DNA from: Macrostomum hystrix
Lineage: Eukaryota; Animalia; Platyhelminthes
Direction: 5' to 3'
NCBI GenBank assembly: GCA_950097015.1
Contig: CATNEN010000025.1
Span: 9,548,001-9,612,000, forward strand
DNA length: 64,000 nt
The notes under the pieces were generated by a model. That model had not been told where the DNA came from and ran no database searches. It saw nothing but the letters and a program-made list of their open reading frames with translations. Position 1 is the stretch's first letter, and each line of letters begins with the position of its first letter. Positions 19,399 to 61,200 of this stretch are shown one piece after another. Made by a program: the position numbers and the translations under genes.

Positions 19399-21946
19399 TT
19401 ACTCAGTGGGCAGCTTAACAAACTTCGCTGTCAGCTCAGCGCAAAACCGGAGAAGGCGCATAATGTCCTCCTCTTGACGAGCACTGCTATCGAATTTCTG
19501 CCATGCCGCCTGAATCTTGGCCTCGCGGCATCTGTAGACTAGCCTGACTCGTCTTCCAGGCCCGCCAGTAGCTTGCAGCTGTCGAGACTGCAGAACTGCA
19601 AGGGCAGCCTGTTGCAATAGGAGCTCAGCCAAGGCATAGAGATTCAAGTTGCCCTTCCTCGCTCTTCGGTTTAGAGCCATATGCCAGCCCTCCACAGAGT
19701 TATTAGTCCGCTCCCTCTTGCCGTGGACAGAGAGTTCTTCCAGGCTCCACACGCTACTCGACAGCCAGGTCACGTCCACATAGCGGCACAGAGAAACCAG
19801 CGCCTCTGTATTCGCTTTGTCGGCAAGAGCGCCAAAAGCAGTGTAAATGTGTTCGGCTGGGAGGAAGATGAGGGCCATCAGCTGCTTGCAGAACAGTCGC
19901 GTGCCCTTATCCACAGCATACGATGCAGCAAGGCCGAGCTCTTGAACTTTTCGAAAGATGCTCTGTGCGAAGTGAAAAGAGCAGCCCTGCAGCTCAGCCC
20001 TCGGGCAGGTATGATGCAGAGCCTCCCACATCGCAGCCTCAAAGTCCAATACAGCTTCAGAAGGAGGAACTCCAGCCAGCTCAATTAGCTTTTGCAGAAC
20101 TTGCAAGTAGTCGTGCTTTGATTTTCCTGACATGAGCGCGAAGCACAATGGCACTTGCTTGTGCTTCCCATCCTTCTGAAGAAGTCCATGAACTGAAAAG
20201 TAGATAATATTTACAATTTCATCCAAATGGAACAAAGCGAAGTGGAGAGAAGAATAGGAGAGAGGGAGACCAGAAGTTTGGTGGTGAATGAGAAAATGGA
20301 GTGATAGAGAAATGGGTAGCGGTGGGGGAGAAAAAAAAGGAGAGAGATAGAGGAGGGAGAGATGAGTTAGGGGTGAGGCTGAGAGGGGTAGAGATAATTT
20401 CCAAATGACAAAGAAATGACAAAACTCAATGACAAAAAGTAACAAACTTACCAGAATATAGTTGCATGAATGGGCTCTTGACGACATAGAATGTTCCATC
20501 GAGAAACCACTGCTTTGTGTTGGCCAGGATTGCAAGCTGCTCGTCTGTTGCGAATATCAGGTGGCGCTTTTGCGTTCTGGCCACAGTCACGTCCGCCTTC
20601 AGAAAGTTTGGTGGAAGTGCATCCTCCTGCAACTCGAATCGGAGATCTGTTGGATGCTGCGGCCGACTTCCTGCGCGAAATCGGTTGGCGTTTCTAGCGA
20701 GCTGTTCCACAGTCGGGGGGTTGACGCCTAAATCGTCGCGCAGACAATGAGCAATCAAAGCACTTTCGGCTATCGCAGCAGCTGGCTCGAATCGGCATCG
20801 CTTTGCCTCGTTTTTTACGTCCCATTGAAGCTCTCTCTTAAGTCCAGCTGCTTTGTCCGCATGGCAGACATGTGGTCGGCTCACATAAAACGAGCCATCT
20901 GCTGTCTGCTTCACAGAACCGTTGCATGTCAAAGCTTCGCTGCGGACGATACACTTCCAGTAATTGCAGCCAGCTTTTCCTCCATTGCGTCCGAGAATGT
21001 AGCCATGGGAAGACACGAGCAAGTCGCCGCCACGCTTGCTAATTCCAGGCTTCATTTCAAACTGTTCCGGCTCCATCGGTATCTGTACTTCAGCTAAAGG
21101 AGCTGGATCAGGAAGAGATCGTCGCCCAGCGGCATCAGTAGCCGTAGCAGCAGCGGCAGCAGCAGCAGCAGACAGCTCGGCGGCAGTATCAGCAGCAGCA
21201 GCACCACCAGACTCGGCAGCAGACAGCTCGGCGGCAGTATCAGCAGCAGCAGCACCACCAGACTCGGCAGCAGACAGCTCGGCGGCAGTATCAGCAGCAG
21301 CAGCACCACCAGACTCGGCAGCAGACAGCTCGGCGGCAGTATCAGCAGCAGCAGCACCACCAGACTCGACAGCAGACAGCTCGGCGGCAGTATCAGCAGC
21401 AGCAGCACCACCAGACTCGACAGCAGACAGCTTGGCGGCCGCCTGTTCAAGTTTTTTGTCAGATCGTGATTTTATTAGCAGTCTTATCGATGCAAGGCAC
21501 AAGCTTTAATTTTCTGTATATTAAGCTGTCTCTAGCTGCACAGTAAGTTGGGATTTGCTTTTCTGAAAATCTTTATTTTCTAATCTGGTTCGTGTACTGC
21601 AACTTCAAGTTTATGTAGAAAACATTATAGATATAAATATGTACAGCAAATAATCTCGCTATTATAATTATAATTATAATAAGTGGTTATGGTAGCTTGA
21701 ACATGACGTGCACATGAATTCTATATTTACATGTGCCATAAAAGTCAATGAGCTACTTACGTTTTTTTCCTCACATCGTGAGCACATCCAGTTGAAGGAA
21801 ACATTTTTGCTCAATATTTCGCGATACTCAGTCTGGGTCATATTAATGCCACAGATTCGATGCTGCCATTGATCACACGAATCGCACAGCAAGGCCTGCT
21901 GTCGCGTGCTGACTATCTTTTGACAGACAAGACAAAAATCTGACAT
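19399..21946 (-). CDS. MULE transposase with N-terminal PHD finger, Ala-rich repeat, FLYWCH and DDE domain (3 exons, 656 aa)
   Basis: Exons 21946-21761 (phase 0), 21442-20452 (phase 1), 20192-19399 give an open 1971-nt CDS. Motifs: C4HC3 PHD; FLYWCH (YWKC...C...H.CH); WFLDGTF..KSPFMQLYSVHG; LDFE; GCSFH; RTNNSVEGWH. Confidence 0.9.
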
Positions 21947-28321: not shown

Positions 28322-29140
28322 ATGGCTGAGCGCCAAGGCGCCTATCACCTGTATCACATGCAGCAGCAGCAGCAGCAACACGTCAGATCCAGCGATCAAT
28401 CATTCTGGGATAAGGAGATGCGCGCCATTGAAGCCATCCCGGCCGAACTATCCGCCTTCAAAAGCGCCGAATTGCCATTGGCTAGAATTAAAAAGATTAT
28501 GAAACTTGACGACGATGTGAAGACAATGATGATTGCCGCCGAGGCGCCTCTGTTGTTCTCCAAAGCTGCCGAGATCTTCATCAGGGAGCTGACGTACAGG
28601 GCCTGGGGTCACACGGAGCGAGCCCGCAGGCGTACACTACAGCGTAACGATATAGCTCTCAGCGTTGGCGATCCGGAAACGGACCAGTTCGACTTTCTCA
28701 TCGACATTGTTCCTAGGGAAGCTCTGCCTGCGCCGCCTCCGCCGCCTCATTCGCAGCAGCAGCAACAGCAGCAGCAGGCCCTGCAAGATCCTGCAACCCC
28801 TGCCGTGACCAATAGCAACAATAGCAGCGTCAGTGCCAGCAGTAGCTCGGACAATAGCCAGAATAAGTCTTCCTCGGCCTCATCTTCAGCTTCCTCTGGC
28901 ATTGTGACTAGTGCAGCTGCTGCTGGCATCCAGTATGTTATTCAATTGCCAGTTAGCGCCGCCGCCAACCCTGCCGCGGCTTTGACTCAGGCCCAGCCAA
29001 TGCAGATCTTCATCGGAAATCAGGCCGCACCTGGACCTGGCGGCCCCTTCGATGTCAAGCCAATGATTGTCGCATCGAATGCTAGTAGTGAATCGGCAAC
29101 TAGCACTGGCGCAGTCGGGCACACAGCTTACAATGGCTAG
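28322..29140 (+). CDS. NFYC: Nuclear transcription factor Y subunit gamma (NF-YC), single coding exon, 272 aa
   Basis: Histone fold [46 protein letters not shown]...[10 protein letters not shown]...[13 protein letters not shown], followed by a Gln/Ser/Ala-rich tail. Confidence 0.95.
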
Positions 29141-31316: not shown

Positions 31317-31441
31317 TTAGTTAGTGCCGCTTGCTGTCGCAACTTAAATTCAGTCTAAATTTGCATTTGCAGCTACGAACGAACTATCATAAGTATAGGT
31401 GAATCAGTTAGCGAACAGTCGCCTCTGAGGTGCTAGACGCT

Positions 31442-34302
31442 ATGAGCTCCGGGCAGCAGCAGCCGGCAGTGCAGCGGATCACGCCTAGCAGAGCGGAGCT
31501 AACGCAGGAGGTCAGCTTTCCGCAGCATTCGCTGCACTGCTCACTATGCAATATGCCATTCAGATCCAGCAGCAATCTGCGCTTCCACATGATTAAGACG
31601 CATCGATGCACTGATCCCAGCGCAGCCATGGCCGCAATCGCATCCACAGCCTCTTCTCAGGCTAGCGCCGAGTCGATTAGCCTAAAACGCTACCACTGTC
31701 CGGAATTCAATTGTCGGTATAGCGAACTTAACGGAGAATATTTCAGCTCATTTTCTAGAGTTAAACAGGTGATTATCGTTGCCCTTTGCTTTTCAGGGGG
31801 TTTACGGGGATTTATGATGGATAAGCAGGGATCTCTAGGGATGAGCTGTTTTGGGATCTGAACTTCAATGTCTAGGGATGAGCTGTTTTGGGATCTGAAC
31901 TTCAATGTCTAGGGATGAGCTGTTTTGGGATCTGAACTTCAATGTCTAGGGATGAGCTGTTTTGGGATCTGAACTTCAATGTCTAGGGATGAGCTGTTTT
32001 GGGATCTGAACTTCAATGTCTAGGGATGAGCTGTTTTGGGATCTGAACTGCAATGTCTATGGGTGAGCAGTTTTGGGATCTGAACTGCAATGTCTATGGG
32101 TGAGCAGTTTTGGGATCTGAACTGCAATGTCTATGAGTGCGCAGTTTTGGGATCTGAACTTCAATGTCTAGGGATGAGCTGTTTTGGGATCTGAACTGCA
32201 ATGTCTATGGGTGAGCAGTTTTGGGATCTGAACTGCAATGTCTATGGGTGAGCAGTTTTGGGATCTGAACTGCAATGTCTATGAGTGCGCAGTTTTGGGA
32301 TCTGAACTTCAATGTCTATGGGTGAGCAGTTTTGGGATCTGAACTGCAATGTCTATGAGTGAGCAGTTTTGGGATCTGAACTGCAATGTCTATGAGTGAG
32401 CAGTTTTGGGATCTGAACTGCAATGTCTATGAGTGCGCAGTTTTGGGATCTGAACTTCAATGTCTAGGGATGAGCTGTTTTGGGATCTGAACTTCAATGT
32501 CTATGGGTGAGCAGTTTTGGGATCTGAACTTCAATGTCTATGGGTGAGCAGTTTTGGGATCTGAACTTCAATGTCTATGAGTGAGCAGTTTTGGGATCTG
32601 AACTGCAATGTCTATGGGTGAGCAGTTTTGGGATCTGAACTGCAATGTCTATGGGTGAGCAGTTTTGGGATCTGAACTGCAATGTCTATGGGTGAGCAGT
32701 TTTGGGATCTGAACTTCAATGTCTATGAGTGAGCAGTTTTGGGATCTGAACTGCAATGTCTATGGGTGAGCAGTTTTGGGATCTGAACTTCAATGTCTAT
32801 GAGTGAGCAGTTTTGGGATCTGAACTGCAATGTCTATGGGTGAGCAGTTTTGGGATCTGAACTGCAATGTCTATGGGTGAGCAGTTTTGGGATCTGAACT
32901 GCAATGTCTATGGGTGAGCAGTTTTGGGATCTGAACTGCAATGTCTATGAGTGAGCAGTTTTGGGATCTGAACTGCAATGTCTATGAGTGAGCAGTTTTG
33001 GGATCTCTATTTCAGTCTCTTGGGATGAGGATTTATGGTCTAAAACAATTTTTAAGATAAAAAAATCGCAGTAGCTGGCATCGTCTTCCCACAAATCGCC
33101 TGCAGCACTACAGCTGGAAACACCTGGAGAAGAAGTCTCAGTGCGACTACTGCTCTCGTCGCTTCCCATCTCAAGCCCTGCTCAGGCTGCACGTGCGCGA
33201 CTGCGGCAGATTTTTCAACTGCGAAGAATGCTCGAGGTTCTATCGCGATCTGAAGAATTTGCGCAGTCATTTTAAGAAAACTGGCCACGGCTTAAACAGC
33301 ATCTTCAGCCAGCGAACTCGGCGAAGCCCGTCAGAACTGCAACAGCAGCAGCAGCTGCGAAAGCAGCAGAAACAGAAGTCATCCACTAGGACCATTGACT
33401 TGGACGACTGTACTCAGCAGCCCAGTGTTGGCCTGGATGTCTCAAATTCTTTTTCGTCCACAGTTGCAGTCGGTAGCGGCGGAAGCGAGGCCGGCAATTC
33501 ATCGTTGAACCTGGTGATTGTGGTCACTGGTTTAGGCGGCTCAACGCCAACAGCTACGGTTTCTGCTGTCTCTTCGACGGCGGCCGTGGCTGCGGCGTCG
33601 GCCGCGTCGTCGTCTGGCAAGGCCGACTCGGCATCAGCGGCTTCCAACAGTCGCTATCGTCAATTGGCGCCGCGTCCGTTGCCTACAACCAATCGGTCCA
33701 GCCAGACAGATCCGTCGCCATCGCCGGAGCTGCTGGCCGCCCTGCTGCAGCAGCATCAGCAGCATGCGCAGCAGAGGCAGCCGCTAGTGCAACAGCAGCA
33801 TCACCATCATCAGCAAATGTTCTCCAGATCGCATCACCACACTGGCCCGATCATGGTGCCCAACCATGCCAGCTTTCGCGGCTCCAGTTGTTCCAGTTTT
33901 GCCGTGGTCTCCATTCAAGATGTTGGACAGCAGCATCAGCAGCAGAGTACCATGCATACTCAAACTGAATACACTTCGCCAATTGCTACTGAAGGCTATT
34001 CGGTTGGCGTCCAGTACTCCCACCAGCAGCAGCAGCAGCAGCAGCAGCATTCTCAGCCAGCCGCCGGCGTAACCCACGGCGTCTGCGTGGGTTCAGGCGC
34101 CTCTCCGCCCATCACTCTGGGCATCCAGGCTGGGCCGGATCCGCTGGAACAGCTGCTTGACATGGAGACCCAGACAAATGACGCATTCTGCAGCGGCGGT
34201 GGCGGCTTTGCTGGCTGCGAAATGGAAACTCAAACTTACGAAGAATTCGACTGGGACACCATGTTCGGCATTGTCAATCGGCGATCTACCGGCGTTGGCT
34301 AG
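31442..34302 (+). CDS. ATMIN: ATM interactor / ASCIZ zinc-finger protein, 2 exons, ~507 aa
   Basis: Exons 31442-31768 and 33106-34302 (phase 0). RYHCPEFNC...FSSFSRVKQ|HYSWKHLEKK.QC..C...F....LL..HVRDCGRFFNC..C...Y.....L.SHFKKTGH fits the ASCIZ ZnF array. C-terminal SQT/TQT dynein-light-chain motifs present. Confidence 0.85.
31830..33005 (+). repeat. 37-bp intronic minisatellite (AGGGATGAGCTGTTTTGGGATCTGAACTTCAATGTCT)n, about 31 copies
   Basis: Visible; fills most of the ATMIN intron. Confidence 0.95.
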
Positions 34303-40680: not shown

Positions 40681-40726
40681 ATTGGCCAACCAATGAGGAC
40701 TCGCTAGCCGCAGCTCACCTATAAAA
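40681..40726 (+). promoter_or_regulatory. Candidate core promoter: ATTGG and CCAAT boxes plus TATAAAA
   Basis: ATTGG 40681-40685, CCAAT 40690-40694, TATAAAA 40720-40726, about 100 nt upstream of the ATG at 40827. Confidence 0.55.
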
Positions 40727-40826
40727 TCAAGAGCGAAAATTGCCGCCCGCGCCTACTCCCCACCTGCTATTGATCCTAGTTCAAATTTGCCAGCCTCTAT
40801 CAGGTGAATTTCAGCTGATACCAGCC

Positions 40827-41431
40827 ATGAAACTAACCACTCTGCTTGTTGTCTGCCTGATCGGTGAGATTTTCGCTCTGTAATTATTTTATTTGTACTA
40901 CAAAAATCTGTATTTAGTATCTGAGCTACTGATAACTCATATTTCAGCTGTCAGCGTCTCGATTTCGAGCGCCCGACCCAGCGAGGAGCGCGGCAATTAT
41001 CAGTGAGGAAGCTTAAATTCAGAATCTAAATTTTTCAAATTCGTGCCAATATTTCTAAGAAAAATTACGGCGTATACTTTCTTCATGAAATTTTGTCATG
41101 GATTTCATGTTCCCGATCGGAATAAAAAAGAAGAATATCTCTTAATTCTTTCTAAAACCAGCTTAGACCTGATTTTGTTATTTTATTTTTTTCTAATTTC
41201 TTAGCGCGATTTAAAAAAAATCACGTAAATATGCGATTTTTCGTTAAAACTCCGCCCGCCAGGAGCAAGCGCTGGTGGCCGGTGAAGTACTACGACGCCG
41301 AGAACATACAGGTGAAACGCTTCGGCGGTGGCCACCGGGCCCAGGACCTGGACAATTATCCCGATTTCAGCTCCAAGCGCTGGTGGCCGGTGAATCCTCA
41401 CGAGGGAGCGGCCGGCGTACGACGTCGTTAA
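40827..41431 (+). CDS. Secreted peptide prohormone / neuropeptide-precursor-like protein, 3 exons, 86 aa
   Basis: Exons 40827-40863 (phase 1), 40948-41002 (phase 2), 41263-41431 give MKLTTLLVVCLIAVSVSISSARPSEERGNYQSKRWWPVKYYDAENIQVKRFGGGHRAQDLDNYPDFSSKRWWPVNPHEGAAGVRRR*. Signal peptide, three KR sites, repeated SKRWWPV. Confidence 0.8.
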
Positions 41432-44128: not shown

Positions 44129-46975
44129 TTATTTCCTTCTACCAGGCGGCTGCCGCTGCTGCTGCTGGCGCGGTCTCAGCGGTTGGGCCGACAAGGCGAT
44201 CGGCTGCTGATGCTTCTGCTGCTGCTGCGGCGGTGGTCGCTTCATTGGCTGCGCTTGCAGTGGCTGCGGAGGCGGCGGCTGCGGCGTCGGAGGCTGTGGC
44301 GCAGCTGGCAGGCTGTTCATTGTGCCGAAGGAGGCGGTCATGTCGCTCGGGTGCTGAGCGGCCACGCTGCTGCTGGCTAGCGACGATCGCGGCTTGGGCA
44401 TCGGCGGAGCCTGCGGCGGCGGCTGCTGCTGTTTCCGAGGCCGCACAGGCTGAGCCTGGATGGCATTCGGCGAGGGCCGCACCGGCGGCTCGCTGAACAA
44501 TGACCTGGCGGCTACACTAGGCAGCGAGGCCTCAGATGTCGGCCGGGTCAGGCCGCCCCCGCTCAGGCCGGCGCCGGCTCCGGCTGGCTCGCTGAACAAC
44601 GAATGCCGACTGTTGTAGACCGATGAGCCGGAGCGAAGCGGCTGCGATGTTAGCAGCGACTGCTGGCCGCGGATGCTGCCGGCCACGCTGCCTGCGGACA
44701 GCATTAAAGATGGGATTTTTTCAATGGAGTTGGCGACGGGATTAGGGATGGGATTGGCTATGGGATAAGCAATCGGATTTGGGGTAGGATTGAGGATCGA
44801 AAAATAAGAGAATTAGTTATAGGTTGAGAGATGGGGGGTCGGTGGCAGAGCGGTTAACGCGTTTGCCTCTCGCACCACGGTCCTTAAGTTCGATTCCGCG
44901 GCGAGGCCACATTTATTTGGGGCGCAGCCGCGGAGAGAAGGCTTGGGGGCTTGTCGTGCAATTTACGCCCTTGAGGGCCAACCTCCAAGGCACAGTGAAG
45001 GTGTACACTGCCTGACGATGAGAAAGTCAGGGCAGATGTACACACCTGTGTGAGCGTGTGCCTGCGTACAGTATCCGTGTGCGTGTGTGCTCAGGAGTCA
45101 GCGAAATGGGCAGAATTGCCTCCTCGCTGGCGGCGGGTCTAGTGTCACTAAATAATGTGTCACTGCCCGCAGCCCTCCTGCAATTATTATTCCTATTATT
45201 ATTATTATTTGGTTGAGAAATGGGTTTAGGGGTTTAAGGGATTAGGGACGGGATTAGGGTGGAATTATTGGGAACTCCAGGAACCATTTCAAACGGTGCA
45301 GGTCCTCACCTGGTCGCGAGTTGCCAAACTGCTGCTTGGAGACCTGGCTGGTGGTGCCATTGGAGCCTCTCTGCCTGAAGCCCTGCACCAGACCGAATGC
45401 GATGGGCGCGGCTGCGATGACTGCGCCGAAGAACACAACAACTCCGACAATGATGTGCCGGTTGCTGTACGCCTCCAGGCTTGAGGTCGAGGCTTCAAAG
45501 CAGCCGACGGGATTCATGAGGGGATTTTGGGACGGCACGGCCGGCTTGTTGTTGGTGCAGTCGGCCAGCTTTGACGGGTCGGAGCGGGCCTCCAGCTGGC
45601 AGCAGCTGTCAGGAATGTTCGGCGTGGTGTGCGGAGTTCCCTCGCTCAGCTTGCGGTACCAAGGAGTGTTCTTGTAGGCCTTGAGGTAGATTGGAATGAA
45701 CGAGACGAAACTAATTTGATGATTAGGGTAGCGAATTCTTTGCTTCTTTGCTTTGGTGACAGTCACCTGAGGACCATCCGGTCATCGAGCAGGTGACACC
45801 TGAGGATTATCCGGTCATCCAGCAGGTGACACCTGAGGATTATCCGGTCATCCAGCAGGTGACACCTGAGGATTATCCGGTCATCCAGCAGGTGACACCT
45901 GAGGATTATCCAGTCATCCAGCAGGTGACACCTGAGGATCATCCAGCAGGTGACACTTGAGGATTTTCCGGTCATACAGCAGGTGACACCTGAGGATCAT
46001 CCAGGAGTTGACACCTGAGGATCATCCAGGAGGTGACACCTGAGGATCATCCAGGAGGTGACACCTGAGGATCATCCAGGAGGTGACACCTGAGGATCAT
46101 CCAGGAGGTGACACCTGAGGATCATCCAGGAGGTGACACCTGAGGATCATCCAGGAGGTGACACCTGAGGATCATCCAGGAGGTGACACCTGAGGATCAT
46201 CCAGGAGGTGACACCTGAGGATCATCCAGGAGGTGACACCTGAGGATCATCCAGGAGGTGACACCTGAGGATCATCCAGGAGGTGACACCTGAGGATCAT
46301 CCAGGAGGTGACACCTGAGGATCATCCAGGAGGTGACACCTGAGGATCATCCAGGAGGTGACACCTGAGGATCATCCAGGAGGTGACACCTGAGGATCAT
46401 CCAGGAGGTGACACCTGAGGATCATCCAGGAGGTGACACCTGAGGATCATCCAGTGATCCAGCAGGACACGTGGTTGATCATGAAGTGCCTGATTGCTCA
46501 CCATCTGAGCATCGTTGGTTCGCACGGCGCAGCACCTGGAGTCGATCTGCATCTGATTCCAGGCCTCGAAGATGGCCGGCTCGCTGGCGCCGTAGCGTTG
46601 CAGCGAGCCGGCCAGGCTGGCCTCGAGTCCTGTCTGCGCGCTGCCAGCCTTCAGGCCGCCGGCCAAGCCCAGCGCTGCCAGAGCCAGAATTGCCGCCACA
46701 GCCAGGATGACGCACGCGGCAATATCCAGGCCCTTATTGCCATAGAGTTGTGATATGATGCCGCCAAGGCTAGCTACAATGAGCAAACCCGCGGCTGACA
46801 TGTCGATGTACATTGGCACATAGGCAGACTCGGCGTAGCTCAGTATTGGCCGCAGGTTTCGGGCGGGTCCCTGCACGGTGAAGGCCAAGATTAGACTCGC
46901 GAGGCCCAGAGCCAGGCCGATGGCGCAGAGGGCCAATGTGGCCGCGCGAAGCTTCGGACTCGTCGTCTTCCGCAT
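44129..46975 (-). CDS. Atypical tetraspanin-like protein with long low-complexity C-terminal tail, 3 exons, 468 aa
   Basis: Exons 46975-46502 (phase 0), 45679-45310 (phase 1), 44691-44129. Three N-terminal TM segments; loop with WNQMQ...CCAV, PDSCC and GC; TM4 IIVGVVVFFGAVIAAAPIAFGLV; P/Q/S-rich tail. Confidence 0.75.
44836..45185 (+). mobile_element. tRNA-derived SINE family 1, most complete copy (in tetraspanin intron 2)
   Basis: A-box TGGCAGAGCGG, B-box GTTCGATTC, unique body, AT-rich (TTA)n tail. Homologous copies at ~28100, ~49552 and ~60086 (minus). Confidence 0.8.
45768..46455 (+). repeat. Intronic minisatellite: 33-bp units then 25-bp (AGGTGACACCTGAGGATCATCCAGG)n
   Basis: Visible; tetraspanin intron 1. 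Confidence 0.95.
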
Positions 46976-55209: not shown

Positions 55210-58200
55210 TCAGCGAGGACCGCCGACTGGTTTCTCGCCGGCAAGGCTGAATTTGACTCGCTTCTCACTCTGCTGCTGCTGCTGCTGCTGCTGACGCCGA
55301 GAACGGGGCGGGCGGCGTCGGCGAACTCCTCCACGGCCAGTTTGAGACTCGTCCTCAGATGATTGCAGAGCTTCCTCGTCCTGAGCCGCCGCAGCCGCCA
55401 CAGCCGCAGTCACGGCGGCAACTGCGTCGGCGCCGAAGAGCTCTGGATCAGAGTGGTGTCGCTTAGAGCGACCGATACTGCCGCCTCCACCATTATTGCC
55501 ACCACCCACATCCGCAGTGCCGCCTCTACTATCGTTTCCGCCAGTCTTCGCGCCTGCCATCGCCGCTGCCGATGTCGAAGCCGTCCTGGTATTGGAGCGA
55601 GCGGCGTCGACCTCCGGATCGCTGTCCTCATGACCCAGCATGAAATCGTCGTCTGACCAGGCCGTCTTGGTGTTGCCACCGTCGCTGAATTCGTCCTCTT
55701 CAGTGTCGTAATTGAAATAAAAGTCTTCGTCGCACCAGCAGTGGCGGGCGTCGTCGTCGAAGTCGATTTTCAAATCGGCGACTCGTCGACCGGCGACCGT
55801 CGGCGATCGATAACTGGCATTGGCACTGCCAGGCCGGTCGAGGCGGCAGACCATCTCGGCCAGGTCGGTGAACTTTAAAGAGGCGTCCTCCCGACCGCCG
55901 GCCATCAGGACGTCGGCCACCTCCTGGGCCACCTGGCGTTTCAGCACCGGAAGCTTCTTGGCCTTGGCCCAGCGCTCAATCTGGTCCAGGCAATAGCGAT
56001 ATCCGACATCGTTGATCTCGTCGAATGATCCGAACTGCAGGGTGCCGTATCTCTCAATTGGCGGCCGCATGTATTCGCAGATGCCGTCTGATTTGACGCT
56101 TTCTAATTGACGCACACAGGACACGTAGGCCAGGCGCGATTGGATCTCGGTGAGGTTCGGCACGTTCACCTGGATAAAAAAACAAAACATAGTTCTAGGA
56201 TGCTGAGATTTCTACTGCAAGTAGACTATTACGAATAATGCGATAGTTTGGTAACTACGAGTGTTCGGGAAAACAAAAATAGACCTATAAATTCTCGTAA
56301 AAAGGGATTTCTTAAACATAAACATCAATTTTTCACGAGCTAATGCTGGCATCGATTACAGCTGGGTGAACTGGGTAGGCAATTAAGTGTCTAGGATTCG
56401 AACCCCAGACCACTCAGTTAGGAGTCTGAAGTTCAAACCACTGAGCTACACTTTCTGCAGCAGTGGGCGTAAGATGTTAATATTTCTACTGTGAGTAGGC
56501 TATCCAGAACGCGAATGAGTCAATATTTTGCAACAAAAAACATCGATCCAGACGCACCCTGCAACTGAAGGGATTCAGCTTCTTGTACAGCAGCCACCAG
56601 CCGGACAGTTCGTCGCCATAGTTAGTCAGATTAGTTTCGTCCTGCGAGCCTACATCAACGGCGAACACCGTCGACGGGCCGTACTTTGAGCGCATCACAT
56701 CGGCTGGCAGATTATTGACATAGCCGCCGTCTAGAAGCAGGTTGCCAGTGTCCGGATCGCACAGAGGTGGCAGGTAGCCGCTGAGGGACATGCTGGCTCG
56801 CACGTAGCGCCACAATGACCCGCTGGTGTGCACTCGCATCTGGGACTTAGTAATATCGGTGGTGATGCAAAAGTAAGGCAGCCAGAGGTCTTCAATGTTG
56901 CGATCGCGGAACACTGTTTCAATGCCGCGATTGAACGCCCGGCCAGTGAACATGGCCGTCTGCGGATAGGTCAAGTCGGCCAGCTTGGACCAGAGCGAGC
57001 CCATCTCGCGGGCGAACAGGCGCGCCCGGTCCTGGGAGGGATGAGAAATGGCAATTGGAGGCATATTCTTGTAGCATTTGATTTTGCTCAAACAGCGTCA
57101 GTTTGTTTACGAAAAAACTCAGGCAGACAGACAGCTCAGGCAGACAGACAGCTCAGGCAGACAGACAGCTCAGACAGACAGACAGCTCAGACAGACAGAC
57201 AGCTCAGGCAGACAGACAGCTCAGACAGACAGACAGCTCAGACAGACAGACAGCTCAGGCAGACAGACAGCTCAGACAGACAGACAGCTCAGACAGACAG
57301 ACAGCTCAGGCAGACAGACAGCTCAGGCAGACAGACAGCTCAGGGAGACAGACAGCTCAGACAGACAGACAGCTCAGGCAGACAGACAGCTCAGGCAGAC
57401 AGACAGCTCAGACAGACAGACAGCTCAGGCAGACAGACAGCTCAGGCAGACAGACAGCTCAGGCAGACAGACAGCTCAGGCAGACAGACAGCTCAGACAG
57501 ACAGACAGCTCAGGCAGACAGACAGCTCAGGCAGACAGACAGCTCAGACAGACAGACAGCTCAGACAGACAGACAGCTCAGGCAGACAGACAGCTCAGGC
57601 AGACAGACAGCTCAGGCAGACAGACAGCTCAGGCAGACAGACAGCTCAGGCAGACAGACAGCTCAGACAGACAGACAGCTCAGGCAGACAAGTGCACCTG
57701 AAATCGGTCCAATCGTTGCGTCTCCTCCGCCCACAGAGCGCCAACAAACGCCCCGATGGACGTGCCACCAACCATGTCGATAGGTATGCCGGCCTCTGTT
57801 AAGGCCCGGATTACGCCCAGGTGAGAAATACCCCTGGCGCCGCCACCGCCAAGTACCAGGCCGACGGCGGTGCTGGTGATGACGCGAGCCAGACGGCACA
57901 TATCCGACATGGGATTAGGCGGCTCGGACAGCACATCTCTGTAGGTTTCCAGTATTCGGCCGGGGCTACGTCGCGCAAACACTCGTTTGGGCACCCGGAT
58001 GTGCAGGTGCTGCTGAATCACTAGCTGGTTGTCGAAGTAAGGCTCCGAGGCTTTGTTGAGAAATTCGGCGGCCCGACCCGGCGTCGGGTACTCAGTGGTT
58101 TCGCGGTGGAGCAGAATGAGCATGTTCAGCAGTCGACTAGAGTCCGGTAGCACCACCTGGGAAAATGGGAGAATGAGATTTGATTAATCTAGAACTTTTT

Positions 58201-61200
58201 TATATGCCACTTTTTTAAATAAGCACGTAGAACTTTGAGTTCAAATTGTCTATGAGTGGGTTTTCAGTAATTTAGTATAGAGTTTGAGTAATCTAGTATA
58301 GAGTTTGAGTAATCTAGTATGAAGTTTGGGTAATCTAGCATGGAGTTTGAGTAATCTAGTATGGACTTTGAGTAATCTAGTAATAATAATAAAAAAACGA
58401 ATACATAGTTTAGTGCCAAATATGAATTTTGAGTTATCTTGTACTGAGCCACAATCAGGTGCAACAGACGCCGACTAACCCTTTTAACGTGATTCATAGC
58501 GTCAACTTTATCATCGGCCAGGGCAACAATGAGCAGACAGTCGGCCTGCCGGATGCATCGCCTTGTCCAAACAGTTCGTTCAAGGTCGCACAGGTACAGC
58601 AGCAGCCGGTGGTCGTCTTCCTGCTGAGCTAGCCAGCTGGTCATGCGGTACTCATTGTCGCGCTCAAACGCACGCCTTCCAAATCGCTTCAACACAATCT
58701 GCGACGTCAGACGCATGCTCGGCCCTACAATGGACAGGGCGTGCTGAAGCTCCAGCGCGAAGGCTTCCAGCGGCACGCGAGAGCTGGCCGGAAACAGCGC
58801 CACAGAGCGCAGGTTGGCCATCGGTACTCGATGAAGATCGACCATATCGGCGCCGCGTCCTCGGCCACCAGGATTGTCAACAATGTTACCTAGCAGGCGC
58901 TGGGATAACACGGTGATTAGCCTGGTGACAATGTGGGGATGTCGGCGTTTGATCATGTTCAGAAGGTCGACTGGGATCTGGGCCAGTTCGCTGTCGCGCA
59001 CGGCTATCACTGTGGTGGCGCGTGGCCGCAGCGTGAACACCTGCATTGGGAGCGGGTGAATTGGGGATCAGAACACTCGAATTCGATAGGACTTCAAGAG
59101 GAATGGAGAGGAGGAGCGTTGGGGGAATTTGGGGGAATGGGGTAGCGGAGGGAGGAGCTGAAGGATCGGGTGCTGGGGGAATTGGTATAGCGGAGGGAAG
59201 AGCTGAAGGATCGGGTGCTGGGGGAATTGGTATAGCGGAGGGAGGAGCTGAAGGATCGGGTCCTGGGGGAATGGGGTAGCGGAGGGAGGAGCTGAAGGAT
59301 CGGGTCCTGGGGGAATGGGGTAGCGGAGGGAGGAGCTGAAGGATCGGGTGTTGGGGGAATGGGGCAGTTCAGCCGTTAAACAATAAGCAAACCTCCAAGA
59401 AGCCGATCCAGTCGCCGCGGCCCAACTCTCCAGTCAGCTGTTTGTGGCCCTCAGGCGTTGTGTGCGCCTGTCTCAGCCGACCCTGCAGCACAATGTAAAC
59501 ATTGCTGGCTATGTCGCCCTGTTTGTAGAGCGGCTTACCAGACTCCAAGAACATCCAATCCAGCACGAAGTCAATCTGGCGCAGGAATGGCGACATTCGC
59601 CTGACAATGAAGTGCGCCACATGCAAAGCAACGCTAGGCTGCTGGCGCATTACGGCGTAGAAATCGCGACATGCAATAACGGCCACGTGGGCCTCCTCTT
59701 CGCAGCGAATGGTGAATAGAGAGGCCTCGCCAGTCAGTGCCGATATCATGCCGGTCATTTCGCCTGGCAGCACCGAGTACAGAGTGTTGACAGCAGGCGG
59801 AGCGCTAGCAGACAGCTGGTGACATTGCTGCAGCAGTTGCAGACGGCCGCTCACCACAAAGAACAGATTCGGCGAATGGTCGCCCTGGCGAACCAGTTTA
59901 GTGCCGGTCTTCACGCGGGCCAGAGTGACGCGATCGTCTAGCAGGGAGGCGTCAGAGAGGCCGAACACTGCGGCTATGTCCTGATTGGAAAATATGTGAC
60001 AAGGATAGAATCACTAGCGAAAAGGGGGATGATAATTTAGCATGAATAACGAATATGGGAAAGCGATGGGGATAATAATGTTAATAATTGTAGGAGGGCG
60101 GCTGGCATTGGCACATCACTTGGTGACATTAGACCCGCTGCCAGCGAGGAGGCAATTCGGCTCATTTCTCTGACTCCTGAGCACACACGCACACAGATAC
60201 TGTACGCAGACACTCGCTCACACAGGTGTGTACATCTGCCCTGACTATCTCATCGTCAGTCAGTGTACACAATGATTTGTACACAATGAGTGTACACAAG
60301 GCAATGATTTCTAATGAATTTTTATTTTTTTATCAGGGTAAAACATACATTTATGAGCTACGAGCGTAGATTACTAGAAAAAAGTTTTTGAATAGGCATC
60401 ATCAAGCATGAGGGCTACCTTCTTGGCCGCATCCATCAGCGTACGGAGCAGGGCGTCACTCTGCTCGCTAGCCGGGACCCTTGACGCCCTACGCTTGCCG
60501 CCCCCGCCGCCGCCGTGCGCAGATAGCGATATGTGCCGCCTGGGCAGTTCACCCATCTCAAGGCCCTCTAAACTGCCCTTCATGGTGCGCCTATTGCCTA
60601 AAGCCTTCTCAACGGCGGCGTTAAAATCTGTGTCGGCGTCGGCGGCTGTGGCCGTCGAAGCAGCTTCTGCGGCAGCGTCCGCGGCCGAGGGAGAGCGAGA
60701 ACGAGAGTGTGCGTAGACGCGAACTGGCGGCGTCTGCCGATAAGACTGCTGCTCTAGCTGCGTCGCCTGTTCAATGAGCGACTGCCCGCCCGCTGTTTAG
60801 GGACGAAATTTCAATATAAAAAGAGAATGTAAATAACCGTTTATGCTGAAAAACTGCATGGAAAGTGGCAGTTTTGACTCGGGAATCTGCAGGGAAAGTG
60901 GCAGTTTTGACTCGGGAATCTGCAGGAAAATTGGCAGTTTTGACTCGGGAATCTACAGGGAGGGAAAGTGGCAGTTTTGACTCGGGAATCTGCAGGGAAA
61001 GTGGCAGTTTTGACTCGGGAATCTGCGGGGAAAGTGGCAGTTTTGACTCGGGAATCTGCAGGGAAAGTAGCAGTTTTGACTCGGGAATCTGCGGGGAAAG
61101 TGGCAGTTTTGACTCGGGAATCTGCAGGAAGGGAAAGTGGCAGTTTTGACTCGGGAATCTGCGGGGAAAGTGGCAGTTTTGACTCGGGAATCTGCGGGGA

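Follow-up and report, generated by a model that had tools for sequence, protein, structure and literature searches.

The numbering of the flatworm neuropeptide family NPP-36 reportedly goes back to its founding paper, Koziol et al. 2016. In a library of 47 S. mansoni neuropeptides (PMC7284817, supplementary table 3) the family is represented by Smp_136620 (npp-36.1, WFPIKEYRGGLMEV) and by Smp_245940 (npp-36.2a-c, one of the three peptides being WSPVKEFHYDEPIEV). All 4 of these npp-36 peptides start with W-x-P-[VI]-K-x-[YF] and end in hydrophobic-x-V/I, and a W-x-P start is found in 0 of the other 43 peptides of that table. Among the cestodes, the Npp36 precursor of T. crassiceps (PMC11196405, supplement) has a signal peptide, a spacer and SKR followed by a terminal 14-mer, WFPVKQYRGGLVAV, and the E. 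multilocularis NPP-36 is EmuJ_000853400. A list of planarian peptides (Ong et al. 2016, PMC4825013, Table S2) also contains, for the Schmidtea mediterranea transcript dd_Smed_v4_2910_0_1, the unamidated peptide WYPVKEYNNLVEL, sequenced de novo by mass spectrometry (MS) with an ALC of 94%. Judged from its sequence it appears to be the triclad NPP-36; no paper linking it to NPP-36 was found in the literature. It may be noted that the 'Sm-npp-36' of PMC9495596 and PMC13026224 (Smp_201600, ASLSYF) is another gene, numbered in a conflicting way and called npp-43 in PMC7284817, and since only the name is common the behavioural data on it do not apply here.

The precursor gene and its predicted products

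The window analysed here is a stretch of 64,000 nt of Macrostomum hystrix DNA (GCA_950097015.1, contig CATNEN010000025.1), and all parts of the gene described below lie on its forward strand. The original prediction had assembled three exons with canonical, phase-matched splice sites into a protein of 86 aa, and its coordinates turned out to be exact, as both the translation and the GT..AG introns agree with them. Coding exon 1 (40827..40863, 37 nt) begins with the start ATG at 40827, carries the first part of the signal peptide and has the same length and phase as in M. lignano. After intron 1 (40864..40947, 84 nt, phase 1, GT-AG) comes exon 2 (40948..41002, 55 nt), which contains the end of the signal peptide and an N-terminal spacer, with the putative cleavage between SA and RP near 40973. 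Intron 2 (41003..41262, 260 nt, phase 2, GT-AG) has the donor GTGAGGAA, common to M. lignano, and coding exon 3 (41263..41431, 169 nt including the stop) holds all the cleavage sites and both WWPV peptides. The donors thus lie after 40863 and 41002 and the acceptors before 40948 and 41263, and the coding total of 37+55+169 nt is 261 nt with a single stop. GC content is 62% in exons 2 and 3 as opposed to 29-31% in the introns. Use of alternative splice sites would give a truncated protein, or would merely alter the length of the spacer or leader.

Upstream, the promoter elements that had been proposed are present: two putative CCAAT boxes at 40681..40694 (ATTGG at 40681 and CCAAT at 40690; in M. 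lignano an ATTGG lies at -182) and a putative TATA box, TATAAAA, at 40720..40726 (TATAA at -123 in M. lignano). They are weak evidence alone, since a CCAAT box lies 15-60 nt upstream of 5 of the 38 TATAAA sites that the window contains. Two closely spaced AG dinucleotides just before the ATG (40804-40829) could be a candidate trans-splice acceptor.

The protein has only one hydrophobic segment, which is N-terminal with its core near residue 6 (KD9 3.64; after residue 25 no value exceeds -0.18). By hydropathy only, this agrees with the proposed signal peptide, and SA-RP at the presumed cleavage point is kept in M. lignano. The three Lys-Arg sites and the terminal RRR of the prediction were located at residues 33, 49, 69 and 84, respectively. 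The predicted lack of an amidation signal was also borne out, as no G-K/R-K/R site is found anywhere in the 86 aa. Peptide 1 (41273..41314, 14 aa, WWPVKYYDAENIQV) is of NPP-36 type and is bounded by KR at 41267-41272 and 41315-41320. It is followed by a spacer peptide of 18 aa (41321..41374) that is well conserved only at DNYPD (41351-41365), and then by peptide 2 (41381..41419, 13 aa), a diverged copy in which W-x-P-V is all that remains of the motif, after which come RRR and the stop. Peptide 2 (WWPVNPHEG) is diverged yet conserved, its first 9 residues being identical in M. lignano. The repetition of KRWWPV was confirmed at the DNA level: its 20-nt coding stretch occurs exactly twice in the window without a mismatch, and in 100 shuffles it never occurred (0 expected).

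The neuropeptide or prohormone layout that had been proposed is therefore supported by the signal peptide, the dibasic sites and the conserved peptide blocks. Of the general features of such precursors, we found the N-terminal signal peptide with no other hydrophobic segment (from hydropathy only), as well as conserved dibasic sites around conserved short peptides with variable spacers between them. The feature neighbours of the protein in the ESM Atlas include many neuropeptide precursors (PDH, DH31, NPF, galanin), with scores below 0.9 that make them a lead only; the pLDDT of the ESM Atlas model is 0.36. The two spacer products, which diverge between species except at DNYPD, are probably not main signals. 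In DNYPD itself 4 codons are identical to those of M. lignano and 1 is synonymous, though the remaining spacer diverges. An aromatic residue stands shortly before SKR here, in the DNYPD spacer, and also before the peptide in Taenia Npp36. DNYPD may serve as context for the convertase site or may belong to a third small product.

Relation of the peptides to the NPP-36 family

To define the family we took the features of six published peptides, namely a W-x-P-[VI]-K-x-[YF] start, a length of 13-15 residues and a hydrophobic free-acid tail, and we compared the published peptides visually and through a short motif of position classes rather than by database-level alignment. Peptide 1 has in common with NPP-36 the residues W1, P3, V4 and K5, an aromatic residue at position 7, the length, the hydrophobic-x-V end and the free acid. 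The W-x-P-[VI]-K-x-[YF] start stands right after a dibasic site in peptide 1 of both the window and M. lignano, and peptide 2 has only W-x-P-V. With 14 aa and the end I-Q-V, peptide 1 also falls among peptides of 13-15 residues that end in hydrophobic-x-V/I/L, the ends of the references being M-E-V, L-E-I, L-E-V, I-E-V, V-A-V and V-E-L, and like them it has no C-terminal amidation glycine. At position 2 it has W where the six references have F, Y or S (a conservative aromatic change), and at position 6 it has Y where they have E or Q (a real difference). The T. crassiceps peptide, also of 14 residues and also preceded by SKR, is identical to peptide 1 at 6 of 14 positions. The chance of the N-terminal motif is about 2.6e-7 per peptide and roughly 5e-5 over 47 reference peptides and 4 products, a rough estimate that is indicative only because the motif was chosen after the match had been noticed. 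Among the W-peptides, the amidated types (APGWamide, MIP/Wamide, WWamide) were considered and rejected, as Trp is N-terminal here, there is no amidation site and the C-terminal W-G-K/R is absent.

We put at roughly 0.85 the probability that the gene is a Macrostomum neuropeptide precursor of the flatworm NPP-36 family, single-copy in the window, the family link being the match of a 14-residue motif. This link had to be drawn from published papers because the database searches gave only the M. lignano ortholog. The spliced model was joined only for translation and for pairwise alignment with the ortholog, and searches were run with exon 3 or with the ortholog, the other two exons being too short for this purpose. 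HMMER over 1.84 billion representatives returned the ortholog and two spurious hits, and no neodermatan or planarian NPP-36 precursor. The spurious hits, a tandem-repeat ORF and a Kelch-repeat protein (prokaryote-type locus), both score by summed repeats. Pfam and the JGI metagenomes gave nothing, and across the sequence searches there was no alignment-level relative outside Macrostomum. Such silence is expected, since the homology does not extend beyond a 14-residue peptide and a word-index search needs shared 5-mers. In the main texts of papers WWPV-like strings yielded only noise, as NPP-36 peptides occur only in supplements, and the strings tried had no match in the Collins 2010 planarian text and supplements, the Fasciola supplement or the Phan 2022 supplement. 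No record of NPP-36 in Macrostomum was found in the literature, the founding account of Koziol et al. 2016 lying outside that search.

The gene could instead belong to a separate, Macrostomum-specific WWPV prohormone family that resembles NPP-36 by convergence, the core common to both peptides then being WWPV and not WxPVKxY. Peptide 2, which keeps only W-x-P-V, and the W at position 2, present in both copies and in no published member, fit this reading, as does the lack of an alignment-level match outside Macrostomum. We nevertheless consider it improbable, because peptide 1 matches five motif positions as well as the length, the tail and the lack of amidation in animals of the same phylum, and because the database silence is what a 14-residue motif would give anyway. 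The broader proposition, that we have either the first NPP-36 precursor of an early-branching free-living flatworm in which the WWPVNPHEG peptide gained its own receptor or function, or else a separate convergent WWPV family, seems to us rather unlikely.

With membership of NPP-36 as the preferred reading, the suggestion that the WWPV peptides are an undescribed family does not stand: peptide 1 matches both the described flatworm NPP-36 and the MS-sequenced planarian peptide, and a match to a described family was what the original prediction itself had named as removing the novelty. What is new is the Trp at position 2 and the second, diverged yet conserved WWPVNPHEG copy, the NPP-36 family itself being already known and little studied. 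The result is thus a useful annotation and not a novel kind of system. Macrostomorphs branch apart from other rhabditophoran flatworms, and the Macrostomum member, taken with the unnamed planarian peptide, suggests that NPP-36 predates this split.

Processing and likely source

If standard prohormone biology applies, the precursor would enter the secretory pathway by means of its 21-aa signal peptide, which would be cleaved after SA. Prohormone convertases would then cut at the KR and RRR sites, a carboxypeptidase would trim the basic residues, and the peptides would be free acids because there is no glycine donor. Release would be expected from dense-core vesicles by regulated secretion, most likely of neurons. 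The planarian MS peptide shows, by analogy, that the family is processed in this way in at least one flatworm. After release their receptor would probably be a GPCR recognising the conserved W-x-P-V-K start, with peptide 1 as the presumed canonical ligand and peptide 2 as an internally duplicated, diverged copy of it. No receptor or function for NPP-36 was found in the literature, and for three S. mansoni GPCRs the NPP-36 peptides are not among the reported strong interactors.

The source of the precursor is likely neural, and about 85% of planarian prohormones are expressed in the CNS. For some of them expression is in glands and copulatory organs, and the product could also be a secreted peptide of glands (prostate or seminal fluid, adhesive, rhabdite) rather than of neurons, whether derived from NPP-36 or unrelated to it, and the original prediction had left room for a glandular or seminal role. 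Typical seminal proteins are not strongly conserved between species. The peptide blocks here are, which makes this reading less likely. In cestodes, npp-36 expression is higher in the T. crassiceps strain that bears a scolex (log2FC -2.43) and occurs in Echinococcus protoscoleces, which also speaks against it; after beta-catenin RNAi npp-36 is raised. We find a gland source highly improbable, and the cestode expression data hint, by analogy, at an anterior, head-associated role of the neuropeptide.

Conservation in M. lignano and comparison with known systems

Searching with exon 3 returned one protein, M. lignano BOX15_Mlig007078 (90 aa, 67% identity over exon 3, E 8e-16), which is annotated only as 'hypothetical protein' (g1/g2; PAA58252.1, PAA83139.1, PAA88489.1) and for which no paper giving a name was found in the literature search. 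Its locus is present on three M. lignano contigs, each time flanked by a zinc-finger gene on one side and a tetraspanin gene on the other, and the neighbouring ORFs of the window (31430-34302 and 44129-46975) are 58-73% identical in amino acids to those genes, in the same order and orientation. The three locus copies are near-identical (0-1 nt difference in the CDS), presumably reflecting the known partial genome duplication of that species or assembly haplotypes.

The only GT-AG model that gives the M. lignano protein has a 37-nt exon 1, introns in phases 1 and 2, the second donor GTGAGGAA and a similar second acceptor, so that the splicing of 40863/40948 and 41002/41263 is supported by the comparison; at the DNA level, exon 3 with its acceptor is the only similar part of the region. 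Over KR-peptide 1-KR, 11 codons are identical, 6 synonymous and 1 replaced. Over KR-peptide 2 the counts are 8, 3 and 4, with all replacements in the last four residues, and replacements number 6-9 in the signal peptide and in each of the spacers. As 6 of the changes around peptide 1 are synonymous and only 1 alters an amino acid, the gene is under purifying selection, which the codon comparison shows to be focused on the two KR-WWPV blocks. The conservation pattern is that of a functioning prohormone with the two WWPV peptides as its predicted active products. A chance assembly, a pseudogene or different splicing (with the stop at 41004, or through an acceptor at 41205 giving 33 aa) can be given almost no weight: the pyrimidine tract at 41205 is stronger than that at 41263, but the orthologous ORF is intact, the intron phases and acceptor context are conserved and synonymous changes are in excess. 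At the level of sequence, then, a conserved three-exon Macrostomum gene for a small secreted hormone precursor is confirmed as real. As Mlig007078 is a single unannotated gene in a free-living model open to RNAi and transgenesis, the role of NPP-36 could be tested there.

Several other features were seen in the window. The three ORFs at 44129-46975 (reverse strand) jointly correspond to a single M. lignano gene of 498 aa, which has a tetraspanin domain and a long tail rich in Pro and Gln. The C2H2 zinc-finger gene at 31430-34302 (forward strand), which we take to be ATMIN/ASCIZ-like, has an SQ/TQ-rich tail, is split by a 1.2-kb intron of a 37-bp minisatellite and is syntenic in M. lignano. Further away are a methionine aminopeptidase-like ORF (1805-2416), MULE-like transposase ORFs containing a 51-bp Ala-rich tandem repeat (19399-21502, reverse strand), a cytochrome P450 (24539-27238, Pfam), an NF-YC-like histone-fold gene (28322-29140) and, by eye, a patatin/neuropathy-target-esterase-like gene (55210-59968).

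On comparing the precursor with known systems, the M. lignano ortholog is closest, sharing synteny, two introns, 13 of the 14 residues of peptide 1 and the first 9 of 9 residues of peptide 2; it differs in its 90 aa, a longer spacer, a peptide 2 ending in GSGN and an additional RR site within its N-terminal spacer. The planarian WYPVKEYNNLVEL likewise has a W-x-P-V-K-x-Y start, 13 residues, a hydrophobic-x-hydrophobic end, no amidation and a signal-peptide transcript, but it is unnamed in PMC4825013, and its assignment to NPP-36 is our reading, from the peptide alone. With the fluke and tapeworm NPP-36 peptides, peptide 1 shares the W-x-P-[VI]-K-x-[YF] start, the 14-15 residues and the free-acid hydrophobic-x-V/I end, and it departs from them in having W at position 2 and also Y at position 6; peptide 2 is without K5, the aromatic at 7 and a conserved tail. 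The Taenia Npp36 precursor is also a small secreted protein with SKR immediately before the peptide but carries just one copy, at its C-terminus and behind a long acidic spacer, and the S. mansoni 36.2 precursor is, like the one described here, multi-copy.
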